NCBI GenBank assembly: GCA_033442325.1
Contig: JAWQFM010000003.1
Coordinates: 1,899,490-1,963,489 of the forward strand
DNA from: Salpingoeca rosetta
Lineage: Eukaryota; Protista; Choanoflagellata
DNA length: 64,000 nt
Direction of reading: 5' to 3'
The position numbers and the translations under genes were made by a program. Shown here piece by piece: positions 38,319-63,749 of the stretch. The notes below the pieces were generated by a model. That model worked only from the letters and a program-made list of their open reading frames with translations, had not been told where the DNA came from and ran no database searches. The stretch's first letter is position 1. The number at the start of each line of letters is the position of its first letter.

Positions 38319-43561
<5,243 letters not shown>

Positions 43562-49968: not shown

Positions 49969-50533
49969 TCACGCGTCAGTTGCCGCGGGTGTGGGCGCCT
50001 CGAGCGTGAACCATCGCGGCGTGCCCGTGCCCAAATCAAATGAAGGGTCAGACAGGTTCAGCTGCACCACACCCATACACGTCGCCTTGGAACCATAGTC
50101 GCGCGTCCACACGCCAACCTGCAACCAGAATGTGTGTGTGTGTGTGCGTGCATGTGTGTGTGCGTGCATGTGTGTGTGTGTGTGTGTGTTGTGTGTGCGT
50201 GTATGTGTGTGCATGTGTGTGTGTGTACACGTGAATTTGGCAATAAAGTGCGCAGTCCCATTCAAGGGCAGCCACACGACCACAACCGCATTGTTCACCA
50301 CCACGACCACCACGACCACAACGATGACCACCTCGAGGGCGGTGGATGCAATCTGCTCCACGTCGACGTCCTTGTAGGTGAGCGTCTCGTTGAATGTCGG
50401 GTTGACGGTGTTTTGTTGCGCGGACGTCTTGCGCTTCATGTCGCGGCTACGGCTCGGCAGCACGTGCACCTTCACATATGGGCCTGGTGTTGGTGAGTGG
50501 GCAGATGTGGGGTGAGAAAAGAGGGCAGAGGAA

Positions 50534-50587
<54 letters not shown>

Positions 50588-50806
50588 GGGCAGGACGAAG
50601 GGGAGGAGGAAGCAAACCAATCGTTTCGGACCAACGACAAATAGGCACACACACACACACACGCGCGCGCGCACGCGTGCGCAGCACCTGGTGACTGTGT
50701 GCCTGGCGGAGGGCGGAGGCCGCGCGCGTGGTGGACGTGGATGGTGAGCACGTGCTCGTCCGGATCGTAGCGCACCGTCAGCTGCACCTGCCCAAACTGG
50801 TGGTGC

Positions 50807-50896
<90 letters not shown>

Positions 50897-51612
50897 ATGG
50901 GGTTGAGGCGCGTGCACACAGCATGCACGACGAGAGTGATGCACCATCAACAAACGAAACGGCCAGCCCAAACGGCAACTCATGAGACAAGCAACGCAAC
51001 AATGCCAGGAAGACCGAACGTACGCCTGGAATGGCAGGAAGCGACGACGCATCGGCACCCTGATGTCACACGTCATGCCCACACGTTAGCTGAAGATCGA
51101 TTATGGATGTCAGACAAGCACACGTACAAAAAAAGCACAAACGCAAACACAAACACAAACACAGCGCAAGCACAAGCACAAACACAAACGCAAACGCAAA
51201 CACAAGCACAAACACAACAATAGTGCATGGCGACAGTCACTGCTACGCACGAGTTCGTCTGCGGCGTTGTGGTTGTCGACTTCATCGCGCGGGGTGGGGC
51301 AGAAGAAGGTGTACACGAGCGGCGTGTGCACCACAGCATCGTCCATGGCCAGGAGCACGCGCATGTACTGGTTCAGGTGCCGCATGCGCTTCAGGGCAAC
51401 CTGGCGCGTGTGAGAGCGACCAACATAGATCTTGGAGGGGAAGGAGGGGATGCTGCTCCGCTGCGTATCATCAACACTCGACAACAACTTCTGGTGCAGT
51501 TCGTTGAACTCGCTGTAACGGCGATACACAAACGTCACGCTGCCGTCCACACGCTCAACGCGGACCATGTACATGTAGAACTGCAGTGGTGCGTGTGTGT
51601 ATGTGTGTATGT

Positions 51613-51675
<63 letters not shown>

Positions 51676-53651: not shown

Positions 53652-54816
53652 GGTGTGTGTGAAACAGTGTGTGTGACATTCGAAACAGAGTGTTTGAAGA
53701 CGTTTGGGATACCAAATACCATTGTTCACACGCACTGGCACAATCACACCTACACATCCAACATCTACACCACACATCACACAATGGGCACAAACCAAAA
53801 CCACAGCTCTTCTCCTTCGCCAGCATCACAATGATCATCTGCTCAACGCACCGGCCTCGTCGGCGTTGTTGAAGACGAGGCGGAGTGGAATGGCATTGGA
53901 GGTGAAGAAACTGCACCGCTGCGCCTTGATGCCGCTCACTTGCATGCAGGCATCAAGTGGGAGATGGAAGCGTGCAGGCAGATCCCCGGCGAGATCCGTG
54001 AGCGCCGAGGAAAGCGCCTTCTTCCTCGCTTCACTACCGCTAATCGCAGCAATGCGCCGATGCACTGATTTCAGTCGGGCCACCAACGCCACCTGCCACG
54101 CCAGCTCACGCTGCACGCCCGTGGTCGCGTGTGCGAGCATCTGGTCGAGCAGCAGCTGGTACCGCGCGCCGCTGAGTTGGTTGTCGGCCTCGCACCGCAG
54201 CGTCCAGAACAGCTGCATGGCGATGCGCGGGCTGGTGCCGGCGCGGCGAACAAGCAGCATGCTCAGCTCGTTGCAGTGGAACAGCTCAAACTTCACCGCC
54301 TGCACCAGCTGCGGCAGGATGGCGGCAAATGCACTCGTGTCCATGCGCTCGATCCACGTGACGGCGGCTGCGCGGATGTTGCGGTCGGCAAACGACTGCT
54401 GCAGCAACTCCAGCGCCTGCAGCGGCGAAGGCGGCGCCCAGCTCAGGATGAGGGCCTCCAGCTCTTCAACCAGCGTCGGGGTGTGGCACACGGGGATGGC
54501 CTGCACCACACGCGGCAGTGCACGCGCGTCGCCCTGCAGGTCGCGCCGGAACATCCAGATCATCTTCCTGTCGGCCGGAGAGAGGCGATCGAGGGTGCTG
54601 TGGCGGATGATGGCCTGCGCCTGCGCCGCCACAGCCTTGAACGACGACCGCTCGGCAGCAGAGGACACGTCGATGGTCGCCGGGCGCACGTGGTTCGACG
54701 GGAACCAGCCCTCCCGGTCCTAATTGGACGATTTGGATTGGTTGGTGAGGAGGCAAGGGGAAGAGAAGGGGAAGGGGAGATGGTGAAAGGAACAAATCAG
54801 TGTTGTCATGGTGTGT

Positions 54817-54871
<55 letters not shown>

Positions 54872-56144
54872 GGGTCTCTCTCACTCTCACTCTCTCACAC
54901 TCTCACTCACTCACTCACTCACACACACACACACACTCTCTCTCTCTCTCTCTCTCTCACACTCTCTCACACTCACTCTCTCACTCACTCACACACACAC
55001 ACTCTCTCTGCCCCTCTGTGCCTGTGTGATGCAATTGCTTGCAGCATGTGAGCTGCGTGAAAGGTCTGGTGCGTTTGTTCGTACCTCGACGCGCCCGTAC
55101 CACCAGCCGCCATCTGGCTGCTTCACAACAACAATGGGCTGTCCGACATCAAACGAGAGCTCGTCCATGTTCCGCGCGGTGAAGCGGTACGAGGCCACCT
55201 GATGGTGCGCAGCCAGCATGTTTGGAGAACACACGCGCGTTTGGTACGTGAGCACGCAGACTTCGTCGACAACAGCGCTGCATACGCATGCAAGCACATG
55301 CCGACAAACGAACCCACGCACGCAGGTGAACGCGACAATGAACGCGCAAAGCAGCACACACACGCGCGGACACGAATCCTCGCACGCGCAGTTACACATG
55401 CACACGCACAAAATGGAGCGATCTGCTTGGGAGAGAGAGGGATGCTGGTTGCTGGGACGAGGAAGTGTTTGGTGGCGGCGGTTTTGGTGGTGGAACCTTC
55501 GTGGGCGTGGGCGCTTCAGCGGTGGAGGACATGGACACGCTGATTGAGGGCACAGACGTGGTGTCTGTGGCCGCGCTGGTGGTGCTCGCACGCTTGGCCG
55601 CGGTTGGTGAAGCCGACTCCTTTGGTTTGACGTAGTTGGATGGAAACCAGCCAATCCTGATGAAGTGAAGTGCATTGACACAGATGCACGTGAAGCCCCC
55701 GTGCAAGATTGACACTGACATGGTTCAAAACTCGCCATCTCACACACATGTGTAGACGTCTCGTCTCACAAACATGGATAGACTCGTCATCACACACACA
55801 CACACACAAACACACCCGCTGACATGCGTGCACCAACGCAAGCTGCCACCAGCTCACCTGTCGTTGCACTTGCCCTGCCACCACCCGCCCTCTGGCTGCT
55901 GCAGGATGAAGACGGTTGCCCCGAGCGACAGCGTGAGTTCGTCCTCATATTTCGCCTCGTAGTTGTACGTCGCCTCCTGTGCACACGCACACACACACAC
56001 ACGCATGCAGTTTGAGATTGGGCAATGGTACGTACGGCAAGGTGAGAGAGACATGGAATGCAGCAATGTTGATGTACATGTGTGTAGTGTAGTGTTGTAT
56101 GTGCGTGTGTGTGTATTTTGTGTGTGTGTATTTTGTGTGTGTAT

Positions 56145-56178
<34 letters not shown>

Positions 56179-56195
56179 TGTGGGTGTATATATGT

Positions 56196-56243
<48 letters not shown>

Positions 56244-56857
56244 TATATATGTATTTTGTGTGTGTGGTTTGTGTGTTGATGGGATGGCTTTTGAGAGTGC
56301 ACGCACGTATACGAGCGGGTCTTCTTCCTCGGGTTCAGACACGTGTGTCGCCGGAAACCAGCCCTCCTCATCGCCTTGTTGGCCTGTCGCAGTAAGGGAA
56401 GAAGTGAGTGTGTGTTGTGTGAGTGTGTGTTGAAATAGAATACTCGAGGTATTCCGTATGGAAACCAGTCATGCTGTCATCTGTGAATCACCACAAACAC
56501 GCAAACACACACACAAGCTATCGTCCATACCCCATCCATGGCTCAATCCCAGATGCAAGGACGCAATTGCCAACCCCTTCTCGTCCTCGTCCTCGTCATG
56601 CTCCTCCTCCCTCCCACCGCCCTCTCATTCATACCGTAGCACCAGCCGGCGTATTGGTGAATGACAACAACGTCCTCCCCCGTCTCCAGGTCGAGATCAT
56701 GGGACGATTTGCTTGCAAAGTCGTGCGTCACCACCTGCCATGGCGCAACGCAAGGGGTGCACACACAAGCACCACAACAACGTGTTAGCATAATTGATTT
56801 GGTGCGGCAATCATGCACACACACCTAACAAAAGCGAACCCCCCAACACACACCACA

Positions 56858-56925
<68 letters not shown>

Positions 56926-57243
56926 GCACGCACACACGCGCACGCGCACACACACACGCACACACACACACTCACACACACACACACGCACACACACACA
57001 CACACACACACGCACACACACACACACACAAAACATGCAACATGCCACGCAGCCAAACCTTTCGCTCGTTCATGGTTGGCTCCGGCTTCAACGCAGGCAT
57101 CATCTGCGGCGCAAAGGGCGTGCACATGGCGTGAGAACGAAAAAGCGAAAGGACAAAATCACCCAAACACACACACACACACAAAATACAGACAGAACAC
57201 ACACACACACACACACACACAAAATACAGACATGAACACATAT

Positions 57244-57290
<47 letters not shown>

Positions 57291-58752
57291 ACAGACATGA
57301 ACACATATGCACGTGCGCACGTGCAGCAGACACGACTGCAGGTGCACCACGCACTTCAACATATGAGGCCGGGAACCAGCCGGTGCGGTGCTCGATGTCT
57401 CCAAACCACCACACGCCCTCCTTGGCGCGGATGGCAATCACATCGTCCATCTCAAACGACAGCGCAGCGTCACCCTCCCCTAGCGTGGCGGTGGTGATGG
57501 TCGTGTCAGTGGGGTATCAAGAGATGGTTACATGCAGGCAACAATGAGTGGTGCAGGAAGAAGAATGCCAGCACAGACAGCACAGCACCCAACAACACCC
57601 AACAGCAAGGGCGGTGGGGGCACACCTGTGAAGCTGAACATGGCCCTGCAGTGGCCCAGGATCTGGTCTGTCTGCGGGGTGTGCTGTGGCGGTGCAAGCG
57701 GCTCTGGGGGTTTGGGCAGCGACGACAGGTGGCTCGACTGTACTTTTCCTTGCGTGTCGGGGCTGTCAGCGAGGCTGCCAGTCCAGATGTCACCATCTTG
57801 CGACAGAATCTGTGTGTGTGTGTATGTGCGTGCGTGCGTGCGTGTGTGTGTGCGTATGTGTGTGTGTGTGTGTGCGTATGTGTGTGTGTGTTTATGTGTG
57901 AGTGTGTGTGTTTATGTGTGAGTGTGTGTGTGTGTGTGTGTTCGTGGGAGCTTCGACGGGCACCTGAAGACAACGCTGACACATGCAGTACTTTTCCCAA
58001 AAAGCGCAATCACGCAGATGCACACAGATGCACGCGCGTTCGCAACCACACCCACATTCACACGCCCCCGCCCTACGTACGTGGACATCAGCGCCGCGGT
58101 AGAGACTGAGGAATCCAAGCGGAGGAGAGACGAGGTCGTACAAGCTGACATATGTCTGCAGCAGGGGAGATGTGATGGAGACATCCACGTCTTCAAGCAG
58201 TGCAGACGCAGGCGCCGGGAGATTTGAAATGCGGAATCCGCCTGTGGCGGCGCCGCTGGTGTTGCTCTGCTTACTCGCACGGCTGCTTCCTCTTGCGTCT
58301 TCCTCATCTTCCTCGTCGCCCTCAGCGATGGTCGACAGCGCGTGCTTGCGGGCGCTGTCGTCTGCTTCCAATGACGACGACGATGACCCAAGCGATGCGC
58401 GCTCACCATCACCATCACCATCACCATCACCATCACCACCATCACCAGCCGTGGCGTGCTTGCTGGGGCTGCTGCGGTCGGTGTGCGGGAGGGCGCGATA
58501 GAGGACGGGGCGGTCGAATTCGCGCAGGCGGAAGAGGAGGAACGGCGCCTGATTGGCGACGACGTCGTTGGAGCTCAGGTGCGGGCCCCGCTGCTCATTC
58601 TGGCATGGTGGAGGTGGTGGTGTTGGTGTAAACCACAGCAAGCAGCATGCATGACAAAAAAAAGTGTGTGTGGGGGGGGGGCAAAAGGACAGCAACAAAC
58701 AGCAATCATTTGGATTATGTCACAATGATGACAGCAACAAATTTTGTGTGTG

Positions 58753-58785: not shown

Positions 58786-58863
<78 letters not shown>

Positions 58864-61800
58864 TGTCACCTCGTTGAGGCGCAGGAGAACGGGTCCGGTG
58901 GAGAGGACGCGGTGGTGGTCGTAAAGTGGAATCGACGCCCACCCAAGACTTTGCCACGTGATGCCCTGCATTGCGCGATGGATGTGGCAGAAACACACGC
59001 GGCAGTGGAGTATCAAGGAAGGATAAGGATAAAGTTGGACGACGCCAAAATCATACACGCCACCAACGCACACACGTGCAACAATAAAGAGGGCGTTACA
59101 GCAAGCACTGTGGCACGAGAATGCACCAACGCCTCACGTTGTCCGCTGTGGCGCCATCGACGAGGCAAACGATCCTGGTTTCGAGCGGGAGGTGGCGGTA
59201 GAGGAGGCTGTTGGTCTCAATCCAGTCATCGTGTTTCCAAAACACGGTGCGGAAGAACTGTCCGATTGGCTCGTGCGAGCACATGAGCGGGATCATGGGC
59301 GCAATCAGCGCATCGCCATAGTACAGCCCAACCTGGAGGGGAACGGGACAAACGGGAATAGTGAGGGTGTGTGTGTCTGTCTGTGTGTGTGTCTGTGTGT
59401 GTGTGTGTGTGTGTGTGTCTGTGTCTGTGTGTCTGTGTGTGCGTGTGTGTGTCTATGTGCGAGAGAGAGAGAGAGAACATGTGTGCCTGCCACGACGACA
59501 ATAAGTAACGTGGGCAGAAGCAGCGGCGCAGAAGCAGCGGCGCAGACGATCGAACATAGTCCACCGACCCACCCATCCATCTAATCAGGACAGCTCGTTC
59601 AACACCCCCTCCCTGCCTCCCTCCACACCCTGCGTGCTGGTAGAATCCCACGGCTCACCTGCACCCTGAAGAGCGGGAATGTGGCGAGCCACGCCTGCGG
59701 GAGCCGGTGCAGCGAGTCGACGCGGAAGGAGAAGCAGTCTGTCAGCTCTTCGGGAGCCATGGTGATCACTGTTGATCGCGTTGGCGGGCGTGGCGACGCC
59801 GCTTTGCGGAAAATGGCCACCATCTCCTCGCACAGCCGCAGCACATCGCTCAGCACAGCCTCAACCTTCATCATGTCGTGAACCGTGTTCTCCAGCGACG
59901 TCAGCGTCTGGATCGACCGGGAGAGCTGGTGAGAATAATGGTGTGAGGCCAATGGCGTGGAGGCGTGTGTGTGAGGGAGTGAGGGAGGGTGCAAAGAAAG
60001 GGAATGTGCGAAGAAAGAGACGGGACGTGGGGTGTGAGGAAAAGCTGGACAGGTGAGCCGAGCGCATCCACATCACATCGACTGGCCGAAACAGGATACG
60101 CTTCAGACAAGACGCGATGCACATTACGCGAAACTCCACACACCGCATGCATACACCACTGAAACCGCACAATGGCAACCACACACACACACACGTCCAC
60201 GCACGTCCACACACACGTCCACACACACACACGTCCACACACACACACACACACATGCAGACCTCCTTGAGTTCGAGCTCGCCGGCGGCAAAGGAGAGGG
60301 CACGCACGGCCTGTACAAACGGCTTCACGTTGGCCGACGCCGTGTCGATGCGAAGTTCATCCGCTTTCTCCCGCAGCGTGTGCAGAAGATCGTTCAGGTG
60401 CACTGTTTCCGGTGGCGCGACGATGGGCACAAACTTGGTGTCGGGGTGCACGGCGCCGGCAAAGGGGCGGGGCAGCGAGCTGACGGTGGTGACGATGGTG
60501 GTGATGAGGAGAGCGAGAAAGTGTGTGTGTGTGTGTGTGTGTGTGAGTGTGTGTGTGTGTATGTGTGTGTATGTGTGGAAGTTGGTGAGCAGAGGAGGCT
60601 GACAAGTGACCAGCACATCCACAGCAGCGCTGCATACACATATGCACATGAACCTGCACACACAAACACGCACACACAAACACACATACATAAACGAACA
60701 CACGTGCGTGGGCAACAACATCAACAACATGGTGCATGCGATGGCGTGACGCACTCCTTGGTGATGACGCGAAGAACGATGGGGATGCCCTGCTTGTCTG
60801 GTCCGAGGGCGACGTTGTTGAGAACAACGGCAAATGCACCAACATCGCACAGCTGCATGGTGCTGTTGAGGTCAAACGTCTCCGCCGCAGCCGCAAGCTT
60901 GAACACGTGCGTGTCCGCGTGCACATCCACGCCCATGTGGGATTGCACCTCTGCAGCAACCGTCGCAAACTGGGTGGGGGTGTATTGCGTGCAGGCAAGC
61001 AAATCAGACAACACAGCAGTCATGTGAGGTGACGGAGGCAGGGGTTTGTGTTGTGGCAGCTCAGCACATGGATTGTTCGCACAGTTGCATGTGCACACAC
61101 ACACACACGCACATATGCACACATACATACACACGCGCGCACACACACACGTACGGTGGCAGTGGCTGGTACGGTGAACATGGCGGATTGGTCGTTGACA
61201 CAGACGGTGATGCTGAGCGGCTGCTGCTCGTTGTCCGTCCACCGAAAGCGGTCCGTGTTGTTCTCCAGGCGCTCCGGCCTGTGGCGGGGCCCGCGTGTGC
61301 GTTTATGTGTGTGTATGTGTGTATGTGTGTGTGTGTGCATGTGCGTGCGTGCGTGTGAGGATGTGAAGATGTGTGTGTGTAAAGGAGCAAAAGGTGGAAG
61401 CTCACGTAAGGCACGCACAAAACACACGCACACGCACACACAAAACACACGCACACGCACCCACGCGCATGCAAACACACACGTTGCCAACTGAACATGC
61501 ATTGTCGTATACTACCGTGCAATGTCGTCTGTGGTGAGCTGGCGCTGCAGAGTGCGCTTGAGATCATGCACGTCTTGGTCTGCAGTGGTGAAATGCGACA
61601 CCGTTCGCTGTGGACGGAAATGGCCAACAAACAGAAGGACAGAAGGGGCGAGGGAGGGTGAGCGGGAGGTAGGCAGACGTCACGTCACACGTCACACGAC
61701 ACACACACACACACACACATGAATGTGACATGAATCACAGCAGACCTGCAAGATGAACGCTGCACAGAACGTAGGACGCACACGGGGACAAGGCACACAC

Positions 61801-62411: not shown

Positions 62412-63019
62412 GTGTGGCGCACCACTGCGTCCCGACGGAACTGCCGCGTTAAGCCATGCCACATCTTACATCCCTTGTCCTATGCTTTCTATTCTGGACA
62501 CGATGCACGGAACGCATCCCGCATATCTGGTGATATCAAAGAAACACTGCTGCAAGCGTAAGCCCGCAGCAAGACCGGAAGTGGACGAAGGTCCGGCTTT
62601 GGTGAGGGATTAGGCAATAGCTACTGATTTGGACTTTGAGCGATGGCGTGGTGGAACCCCTACAAACCGGAGATAACAGGAGCAACGGGTACCTATTTAA
62701 CGTATTGCTTGGCCACGTAGGCTTCAAACACAGGAGGAAGGTTATCTGGAGAACCAGTGCGGGGCGAGGGGGGCNNNNNNNNNNNNNNNNNNNNNNNNNN
62801 NNNNNNNNNNNNNNNNNNNNNNNNNNNNNNNNNNNNNNNNNNNNNNNNNNNNNNNNNNNNNNNNNNNNNNNNNNGTGGCGGTGGTGGTGATGTGGAAGAG
62901 GTGGTGGAGGGGCCTGCACCATCGTTGCAATCCTCACTGGCTGCCTGTGCGCATGAAGGCTTCAGCTTGGGCTTGCTCGACGGCGGAGGCGGCCGCGGCG
63001 GTGGTCGTGGCGGCGGCAT
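49969..63019 (-). CDS. Class II phosphoinositide 3-kinase (Pro-rich N-term, RBD-like, C2, 5x SH3, helical, kinase, PX, C2)
   Basis: Kinase motifs [10 protein letters not shown] and [65 protein letters not shown] (class II signature). [18 protein letters not shown]; C-terminal C2 PYVKVHVLP...KRKT...NPTFNETL. Start [13 protein letters not shown] at 63019, with an alternative in-frame ATG at 63100. Exon 1 spans the N gap. Confidence 0.93.
62431..62756. other. 326-nt compositionally foreign island apparently inserted in PI3K exon 1
   Basis: High-complexity sequence (about 52% GC, no TA depletion), flanked by GT on both sides. Deleting it restores PPRPAHAV followed by a GTGCGC donor, in phase with the next exon PARPSAP. 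The boundaries were chosen partly by this frame restoration. Confidence 0.65.
62775..62874. other. Assembly gap (100 N)
   Basis: Run of n characters inside PI3K exon 1. Confidence 1.
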
Positions 63020-63749
63020 TGTAGCTGCTGCTGCTTGTTTGTTGGTGTTTGTTGTTGGTGTTGGCTCGAACCAACTTTCATGCAATTTATGCTGTTGCAT
63101 GGAAGTTTTGTTTCCTTTGTTGGCTGCTGGCTGGCTTTGTTTGGCGGTCCTTTTACTTGCGAAGAGCAGAGCAACATGCCTCTATGCCTCGCGTACTTTC
63201 GTTTTCAACGCACACAGACACACAGACACACAGACACAAGACCAACACCGAGATACCGTCTCGCTGTCGCGTAAGGTCGAAACATCACATACACATCACA
63301 CAACATCACAAACACATCACATCACACAACACACATGCGTGCATTTCAGTACAATCAAGCAAGCAACAACTGAAGAATCAATAGAGAAACAAGGGGCGAC
63401 ACACAGCAGCCACGACGCGTGTTGACGCCTGACACGCGCATCTAAAAGGAAACATCACTCTCGCTCTGTTTTCACCGACTCTCTTCCCCCCCCCCCCCCA
63501 AAGCCAGCTCTCAATCAGAAAATCACAATACGGCAGCAGTGTCGAACGCAAATGGTGAATGCAGATGGTGGTTTAGACTGTACGTCGTGCTGGGGGAAGA
63601 GGGGGAACATCAACCCATTCCACCCGATTGTCACACGGCACCGGATGTCACATGACAGCGTTGTGTGCGTGCGTGTGTGACAAATGCCCAATGTCGTACA
63701 ACGGCACAACACCAGCATCATCATCAGCAGCACTAACACTGTCACCCTC

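Follow-up and report, generated by a model that had tools for sequence, protein, structure and literature searches.

Within the PI3K family, it is the class II enzymes whose regulation is least understood. In animals, disordered N-terminal regions that bind clathrin or SH3 scaffold proteins direct their targeting, and in class IA the regulatory subunit p85 touches p110 at its C2 and helical domains. Choanoflagellate signalling proteins are noted for promiscuous domain combinations and domain shuffling, so that a domain fusion alone tells little about pathway logic. Intersectin binds the proline-rich region of PI3K-C2beta (PMC6468456), a background fact that the initial annotation of this locus had given correctly. 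A survey of the domain make-up of PI3Ks, from 2015, reports no SH3 domain in the catalytic subunits, and Philippon et al. described an SH3 domain in a choanoflagellate p85-like protein.

We analysed a window of 64,000 nucleotides of Salpingoeca rosetta DNA, which carries on its minus strand a four-SH3 class II PI3K. It is a real variant of this class: new, expressed and conserved. The domain order C2-helical-kinase-PX-C2 is the same as in P0002, a protein of the animal class II PI3K type (1697 aa, RBD-C2-PI3Ka-kinase-PX-C2); identity to P0002 is 61% over the kinase C-lobe exon, and the animal type (PIK3C2A/B/G) falls in the same tree clade. The difference resides in the C2-helical linker, which has no SH3 in P0002, whereas in the window gene it holds four SH3 domains and one SH3-like module. 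Intersectin also has a multi-SH3 array of five modules attached functionally to a class II PI3K, but intersectin and PI3K-C2beta are separate proteins, while in the window gene the array is a covalent part of the kinase chain itself. Likewise, p85 (SH3-BH-SH2-iSH2-SH2) is an SH3-bearing adaptor serving a PI3K catalytic subunit, as the SH3 block may be; however, p85 is a separate polypeptide acting via SH2, and the window gene has no SH2 and bears its SH3s in cis. A PX domain and one to five SH3 domains in one chain are also found in Tks4/Tks5, p47phox and the SNX9 family, and the SH3s of p47phox and Tks5 are among the solved matches of the window SH3s. Those proteins are non-catalytic adaptors, whereas the window chain is also predicted to make 3-phosphoinositide.

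Ten exons on the minus strand (58599..53851) form one open frame that leads from the end of C2 through the SH3 block into the helical domain. All internal exon boundaries are AG/GT and the joined frame contains no stop codon. In window positions, the features are the following:

58828..59934, minus strand: PI3K-type C2 exons, upstream of the SH3 insertion
58599..58081, minus strand: exon 1, open frame with the last C2 strand (17 residues), an acidic/Ser-rich linker and the first half of SH3-1
57809..57626, minus strand: exon 2, second half of SH3-1 (from an 11-residue stretch to GKVQSSHL), PxxP linker and start of SH3-2; AG/GT boundaries
57479..57355, minus strand: exon 3, remainder of SH3-2; Pfam, junction reads on both sides
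57103..57059, minus strand: exon 4, mini-exon of 45 nt (15 codons, 15 residues) in the SH3-2/SH3-3 linker; RNA joints, both transcript contigs
56734..56635, minus strand: exon 5, first part of SH3-3; Pfam SH3_1, RNA joint
56383..56307, minus strand: exon 6, end of SH3-3 (EGWFPATHV) and acidic linker; frame, splice sites, loose end at 56306
55976..55858, minus strand: exon 7, first part of SH3-4; Pfam SH3_1
55656..55410, minus strand: exon 8, end of SH3-4 (IGWFPSNYV) and Ser/Thr/Pro linker with a 10-residue motif; RNA joints
55198..55085, minus strand: exon 9, first part of SH3-5; Pfam SH3_1, conserved in relatives L001 and L002
54719..53851, minus strand: exon 10, last strand of SH3-5 (12 residues) followed by the helical (PIK) domain in one open frame
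53561-53235 and 52990-52574, minus strand: kinase exons; Pfam PI3_PI4_kinase 8.6e-15 and 5.8e-38
51254..51613, minus strand: PX exon; Pfam PX 1.7e-14, profile positions 1003-1122
49999..50898, minus strand: C-terminal C2 exons; Pfam C2 9.5e-13, profile positions 1102-1255

The upstream C2 exons were matched collinearly by a profile of 44 PI3Ks (221-301 at 59934-59656, 295-350 at 59350-59159 and 344-408 at 59004-58828; best iE 2.2e-5), and RNA joints were present within them at 58964/59137 and 59330/59657. Exon 1 ends before a GT donor at 58080 and its SH3-1 part begins at about 58156. In exon 2, the PxxP-bearing linker (11 residues) precedes the start of SH3-2 (10 residues). The block is anchored at both ends, with SH3-1a in the exon that finishes C2 and SH3-5b in the exon of the helical domain (Pfam PI3Ka 3.8e-34), where SH3-5 ends about 10-15 residues ahead of the first helix. 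The in-frame passage from SH3-5 into the helical domain, as first annotated, is continuous on that single exon, and the kinase, PX and C2 exons follow downstream in the class II layout. All five modules quoted in the initial annotation were found on the minus strand at the positions assigned to them. Separately, two 326-nt islands compared in register were identical at 79 of 326 positions, and they are unrelated.

By domain content and tree placement, the gene is a predicted class II-type PI3K catalytic subunit, in agreement with its original classification. The order C2, helical (PIK) and kinase was collinear on the minus strand by profile, Pfam and tblastn, and PX and C2 lie C-terminally, downstream of the kinase (Pfam 1.7e-14 and 9.5e-13). 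In the tree of helical plus kinase domains, where classes were assigned by tail length and not by curated names, the window gene and L002 fell in a clade of 26 rows (SH-aLRT 100) that also takes in every one of the 17 rows having a class II tail, and the 62 class-I-like rows were outside it. The motifs GDDLRQD (53528), DRHNDN (52945) and HIDFG (52897) are intact, from which the lipid kinase is predicted to be catalytically intact. For the N-terminal half, neither Pfam PI3K_rbd on upstream exon-sized pieces nor the profile gave an RBD match; Pfam PI3K_C2 had no match on the upstream exon pieces and the C2 domain was located by profile and tblastn.

The insertion site was delimited from both sides. 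With tblastn, residues 801-824 of the P0002 C2 domain aligned at 58947-58876 and its helical residues from 893 onward aligned from 54599 onward. The profile mapping on either side agreed with this, and the location between C2 and helical domains that had been proposed for the SH3 block was thus confirmed. The C2-helical linker has about 70 residues in P0002 versus about 560 here, so the predicted structure is a surface linker enlarged by about 490 residues, which comprise an acidic disordered stretch, SH3-1 and four SH3 domains. Considering that the 44-sequence profile has just about 20 positions across the whole SH3 block, that SH3-1 is already degenerate, and that, in the sequences reachable, a single small lineage has the architecture, it could be that exon shuffling placed an SH3 cassette in a permissive surface loop, where it would be tolerated as a passenger with no specific role in the kinase. 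We regard this as quite improbable in view of the conservation described below.

The architecture is not widespread. A search with an SH3 profile found no SH3 in the other nearest PI3K representatives (0 of 149), Pfam found none in the 44 nearest (0/44), and we found no description of an SH3-bearing PI3K catalytic subunit in the literature.

The five tandem SH3 domains of the initial annotation are better described as four clear SH3 domains preceded by one degenerate module. Pfam was run on single exon pieces, with a cut-off of 22.9 bits for SH3_1. Above the cut-off were SH3-2 (SH3_9 5.7e-8, SH3_2 7e-8, SH3_1 2.4e-5 and 24.3 bits), SH3-4 (SH3_1 5e-11, 42.5 bits) and SH3-5 (SH3_1 1.6e-9), and the first exon of SH3-3 alone was slightly below it (SH3_1 4.6e-4, 20.2 bits). 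The two exon pieces of SH3-1 gave no Pfam match. Against a profile of SH3-2 to SH3-5 it showed a weak collinear match (hmmsearch 2.7 bits; hhalign E 4e-4 to 1e-3, probability 8-35%), and the ligand-binding Pro, Phe and Tyr are lost at its end (GKVQSSHL), which suggests a degenerate module that is only weakly SH3-like. As for the other four, the hallmarks predicted to bind ligand (ALYDY-type aromatics, Trp-Trp and GWFPxN(Y/H)V) are largely kept. By inspection, the set formed by the ALYDY-type aromatics, the first Trp, and the Pro and Tyr of FPxNYV is complete in SH3-2 and SH3-4. The conserved Tyr of NYV is replaced by His in SH3-5 and also in SH3-3, where WC takes the place of WW; the end of SH3-3, previously quoted as EGWFPATRV, reads EGWFPATHV.

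The SH3-block PI3K is expressed as one mRNA. In stranded RNA-seq, split reads crossed seven introns of the SH3 block in two runs: the joints 57479/57626, 55656/55858, 55198/55410 and 54719/55085 had supporting reads, 57103/57355 had 15-33 reads per run, 56383/56635 had 15-20 and 56734/57059 had 4-8. The mini-exon 57103..57059, located between SH3-2 and SH3-3, was missing from the initial annotation. Two studies yielded transcript contigs, 4212 and 4455 nt long, that span without a break the stretch from 58394, in the exon of the C2 end, to 53851, with all SH3 exons included, and extend into the kinase. A loose end at 53851 likewise leads into the kinase exon. It follows from the contigs and the split reads that the SH3 exons share an mRNA with the kinase, as had been supposed. 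No exon-skipping joint was present among the RNA-seq joints listed; short reads and RNA contigs may miss rare isoforms.

The data were also considered from the point of view of an artefact, in which the SH3 exons would come from another gene or from a minor isoform, or the locus would be misassembled. Junctions 58081/57809 and 56307/55976 adjoin CA repeats and have no read joints listed, their basis being the two transcript contigs and one loose end, and the two transcript contigs covering C2 and SH3 break in the GAC/GGC-rich linker exon (58081..58599), with pieces at 58453-58601 and 58081-58394. Nevertheless, both contigs join 58081 straight to 57809 and cross the two junctions with exactly the length expected from the model, the loose end at 56306 continues into exon 55976, and raw-read depth is continuous over the linker exon. 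Together with the seven split-read junctions in two runs and the independent contigs from other organisms that carry the same SH3-helical exon, this makes an artefact highly improbable, and we consider it largely refuted.

Contigs of three relatives (L001, L002 and L003), all of them short, were obtained from protein word-index searches; when metagenome contigs were scanned with the helical exon, 128 pattern matches came up and none was confirmed. SH3-1a, SH3-4b and SH3-5a/b occupy the same places across this set. The helical exon has the same SH3 tail in P0001/L001 and P0151/L002 (identity to the relatives 82% and 66%), and the first part of SH3-5 is identical at 30 of 38 residues in L001 and 28 of 38 in L002. 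The IGWFPS.. of SH3-4 is kept in L001 and L002, but neither the adjoining linker nor its PPPKPPPP motif is conserved there; L003 keeps the C2 end and SH3-1a but not the acidic linker. Over 91 SH3 codons, dN was 0.111 and dS 0.836 (dN/dS about 0.13), similar to the C2 end. Judging from these alignments, the SH3-kinase fusion is kept in at least two related species, under purifying selection. It is against the passenger explanation that the SH3 pieces retain this ratio while the linkers between them have diverged beyond alignment, that they persist in a relative with saturated synonymous sites and a contig GC of 38% versus 56% in the window, and that L003 is identical to the window gene at 24 of 27 positions of SH3-1a, degenerate as this module is.

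Regarding kinship, the SH3 domains resemble many SH3 families of endocytic and actin proteins to about the same degree, among them those of intersectin, beta-PIX, CIN85, myosin I, nostrin and sorbin. The best solved match of SH3-2 was intersectin-1 (4iim, 2.2e-9), with beta-PIX, p47phox, myosin I and Vav close behind; those of SH3-4 were CIN85, myosin I and nostrin, and those of SH3-5 were sorbin, LASP1 and myosin 1E. Other families are thus the better matches for SH3-4 and SH3-5, and the comparison does not establish that the array descends from intersectin. Among the features of the intersectin family the SH3 array alone is present, and Pfam scans of the larger exon pieces of the gene detected no EH, DH-PH or coiled coil. 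The Rosetta-stone fusion put forward for this locus holds for the presence of an SH3 array within the kinase chain and fails for a specific kinship with intersectin, and the link to intersectin is an analogy.

Taking into account the general behaviour of SH3 domains, we favour, with a probability of roughly 0.6, the reading that this is one expressed class II PI3K gene whose SH3 array serves as a built-in multivalent adaptor. The array would bind proline-rich partners of the PxxP type, most probably proteins of endocytosis or actin regulation, and would bring the kinase to partner assemblies, or the partners to the kinase. The dynamin, WASP and synaptojanin types named in the initial annotation may be among them. 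Synthesis of 3-phosphoinositide would then occur where the partners are, a job that in animals may be done by a separate SH3 scaffold, such as intersectin for the proline-rich N-terminus of PI3K-C2beta.

A different possibility, to which we give rather little weight, is that the block is a cis-regulatory module: the SH3s would bind proline-rich motifs of their own polypeptide or of a second copy, and the kinase would stay in a closed or oligomerised state as long as no outside PxxP ligand competes, as with a built-in regulatory subunit at the C2/helical interface. PxxP motifs do occur within the block, in the 11-residue stretch between SH3-1 and SH3-2 and the 10-residue stretch between SH3-4 and SH3-5, and a strongly proline-rich stretch of 13 residues lies in a candidate upstream first exon on the same strand (63181..62696). 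The proximity of SH3-5 to the first helix of the helical domain and the known contacts that p85 makes with p110 in class IA, at its C2 and helical domains, also point in this direction. However, the 10-residue motif is missing from the matching linker of both relatives, and the link of the proline-rich exon to this gene, which has a 100-N assembly gap in it, is a candidate one. We see as unlikely a related proposal, in which the array would act as a regulatory 'subunit' in cis at the C2/helical interface, and multivalent proline-rich ligands would switch the kinase on. If such a cis-switch were true, the protein would be a self-contained sensor-enzyme, it would illustrate how control by an adaptor can be built into a class II PI3K, and it could be a template for the control of PI3K-C2beta by intersectin.

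Returning to the built-in adaptor, a natural class II PI3K with an SH3 scaffold in cis offers a handle on what adaptor coupling contributes. The SH3 block may be deleted or transplanted in the choanoflagellate, a model organism with reported genome editing. The locus is a documented domain fusion that mirrors an animal protein-protein interaction: what is a separate adaptor protein in animals would here be wired into the enzyme.

Within the eukaryotic DNA of the window, in which introns are short and rich in CA/TG repeats, a single multi-exon gene runs on the minus strand from about 59934 to 49999. Ten minus-strand exons lie around the SH3 block (modules SH3-1 to SH3-5 in spliced order; a and b, first and second exon pieces). 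All their internal boundaries are AG/GT, and they join into one open frame.

Exons around the SH3 block
58599..58081, minus: last strand of the PI3K C2 domain, acidic/Ser-rich linker and first half of SH3-1
57809..57626, minus: second half of SH3-1, PxxP linker and start of SH3-2
57479..57355, minus: remainder of SH3-2
57103..57059, minus: 15-codon mini-exon (45 nt), the SH3-2/SH3-3 linker, with good split-read support
56734..56635 and 56383..56307, minus: SH3-3, two exons
55976..55858 and 55656..55410, minus: SH3-4 and Ser/Thr/Pro linker, two exons
55198..55085, minus: first part of SH3-5
54719..53851, minus: last strand of SH3-5 followed by the helical domain

The kinase is a class II PI3K, as the initial annotation had it. 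The exon 54719..53851, in which the block runs in frame into the helical domain, matched PI3Ka in Pfam (3.8e-34); downstream exons matched PI3_PI4_kinase (8.6e-15 and 5.8e-38), PX (1.7e-14) and C2 (9.5e-13), and the catalytic motifs GDDLRQD, DRHNDN and HIDFG are all intact. In a maximum-likelihood tree of the helical and kinase regions, the gene fell inside a fully supported clade holding 17/17 representatives with the long class II tail, separate from 62 class-I-like rows. The insertion site was bracketed with P0002, a standard class II PI3K of 1697 aa ordered RBD-C2-PI3Ka-kinase-PX-C2: its C2 residues 801-824 align to 58947-58876, and its helical residues from 893 onward to 54599 onward. Since about 20 positions cover the same gap in a profile of 44 PI3Ks, the block, located between C2 and helical domains as first read, is an expansion of the C2-helical linker by about 490 residues.

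Five tandem SH3 domains had been proposed, and all the peptides quoted for them are present, although SH3-3 ends in EGWFPATHV and not ATRV. Pfam, run on individual exon pieces and not on spliced domains, placed SH3-2 (5.7e-8), SH3-4 (5e-11) and SH3-5 (1.6e-9) above the cut-off of SH3 families, while the first exon of SH3-3 alone reached 20.2 bits against 22.9. No exon piece of SH3-1 was recognized by Pfam. Its match to a profile of SH3-2 to SH3-5 was weak, yet full-length and collinear, and of the GxFPxNYV motif the Pro, Phe and Tyr are all missing; we call it a degenerate, SH3-like module. Ligand-binding hallmarks are mostly retained in the other four.

Introns cut SH3-3, SH3-4 and SH3-5 in the distal loop, immediately ahead of GWFP (56635/56383, 55858/55656 and 55085/54719), at slightly different residues and in phases 1, 2 and 0, and elsewhere in SH3-1 and SH3-2. 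Such differences would be hard to explain if a two-exon unit had simply been duplicated in tandem.

The SH3 block and the kinase are expressed as one mRNA. Two stranded RNA-seq runs, taken as raw reads, gave split reads at 54719/55085, 55198/55410, 55656/55858, 56383/56635, 56734/57059, 57103/57355 and 57479/57626, all CT..AC on the plus strand, that is GT..AG on the minus. The joints 58081/57809 and 56307/55976, which adjoin CA repeats, were absent from the tabulated reads; transcript contigs of 4212 and 4455 nt, each from a further study, bridge them, their lengths agreeing exactly with the exon model, and a loose end at 56306 continues into exon 55976. Both contigs run from 58394 across all SH3 exons to 53851 and on into the kinase exon, and no joint that would skip an exon was frequent enough to pass the listing threshold. 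Two gene models cannot have been merged, because the C2 end and SH3-1a lie in one exon, as do SH3-5b and the helical domain. An artefact is essentially excluded. In both runs, depth over 55376-55572, in the Ser/Thr/Pro linker exon, was 2-3x that of neighbouring exons, which may reflect cross-mapping of low-complexity reads.

Relatives were sought with the exon that holds SH3-5b and the helical domain, as query in a full HMMER scan over 1.84 billion representatives. There was one close match, P0001 (82% identity; next best 35%), whose 2.1-kb metagenome contig L001 also encodes IGWFPSNYV, a shorter linker, SH3-5a and DREGWFPANHVR-helical. A word-index search added P0151 (66%) on L002 (4.5 kb, 38% GC), with the window's order of SH3-4b, SH3-5a, SH3-5b-helical, kinase and PX; the C2-end exon as query recovered P0152 on L003, in which conservation extends to the C2 end and to SH3-1a (24/27 identical) but not to the acidic linker. 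The SH3-4/5 linker motif PPPKPPPP is conserved in neither L001 nor L002. Over 91 SH3 codons, the window and the closer relative differ with dN 0.111 and dS 0.836, a ratio of about 0.13, the same as for the C2 end. This selection pattern on the SH3 pieces disfavours the view of the block as a neutral passenger.

Compared with window 55199-55409, L001:150-480 is without the 211-nt intron that separates the SH3-4/5 linker from SH3-5a, a gain or loss between close relatives; AT-rich L002 shows a frame break at that position. L002, from the more distant relative, has 38% GC vs about 56% in the window, with the kinase C-lobe exon protein about 93% identical by eye count; base composition has thus shifted strongly between these related genomes.

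In this lineage, proteins with unusual combinations of domains are common. The architecture is not widespread: SH3 was found in 0/149 other best representatives with a profile built from the block, and by Pfam in 0/44 nearest ones. A 2015 survey of PI3K domain composition gives class II catalytic subunits RBD, C2, PI3Ka, kinase, PX, C2 and two PfamB regions, and mentions SH3 for regulatory subunits only. Full-text literature searches on class II PI3K together with choanoflagellates turned up nothing relevant; automatic domain annotation may already list the arrangement. The initial observation is confirmed and its architectural reading supported.

Considering that SH3-2 to SH3-5 mostly keep their hallmarks and that selection maintains them, the default expectation is that they bind proline-rich ligands. 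We propose, with a probability of roughly 0.6, that the block is a built-in multivalent adaptor, through which the kinase's 3-phosphoinositide synthesis would be coupled to proline-rich endocytic or actin assemblies. Animal PI3K-C2beta is coupled to intersectin via its proline-rich region (PMC6468456), and the gene had been read as a "Rosetta stone" fusion of that pair. The nearest solved SH3s belong to endocytic/actin regulators: intersectin-1, beta-PIX, p47phox and myosin I for SH3-2, CIN85, myosin I and nostrin for SH3-4, and sorbin, LASP1 and myosin 1E for SH3-5. No one family is favoured, and the intersectin "Rosetta stone" is an attractive analogy rather than a demonstrated kinship.

The main rival, that the block acts in cis through the protein's own PxxP motifs, is rather unlikely; the motifs counted for it include a candidate proline-rich first exon, 63018-62958. 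This upstream minus-strand exon carries a strong SH3-ligand-like stretch and is interrupted by a 100-N assembly gap (62775-62874). Nearby, the 326-nt stretch 62431-62756 is unlike 42036-42361, with 79/326 and 77/326 identities when the two are compared in register on one strand or the other, and a 40-nt word from it occurs once in the window. If the 62958-63018 exon belongs to the PI3K gene, the protein would combine its SH3 domains with the ligand that they probably bind.
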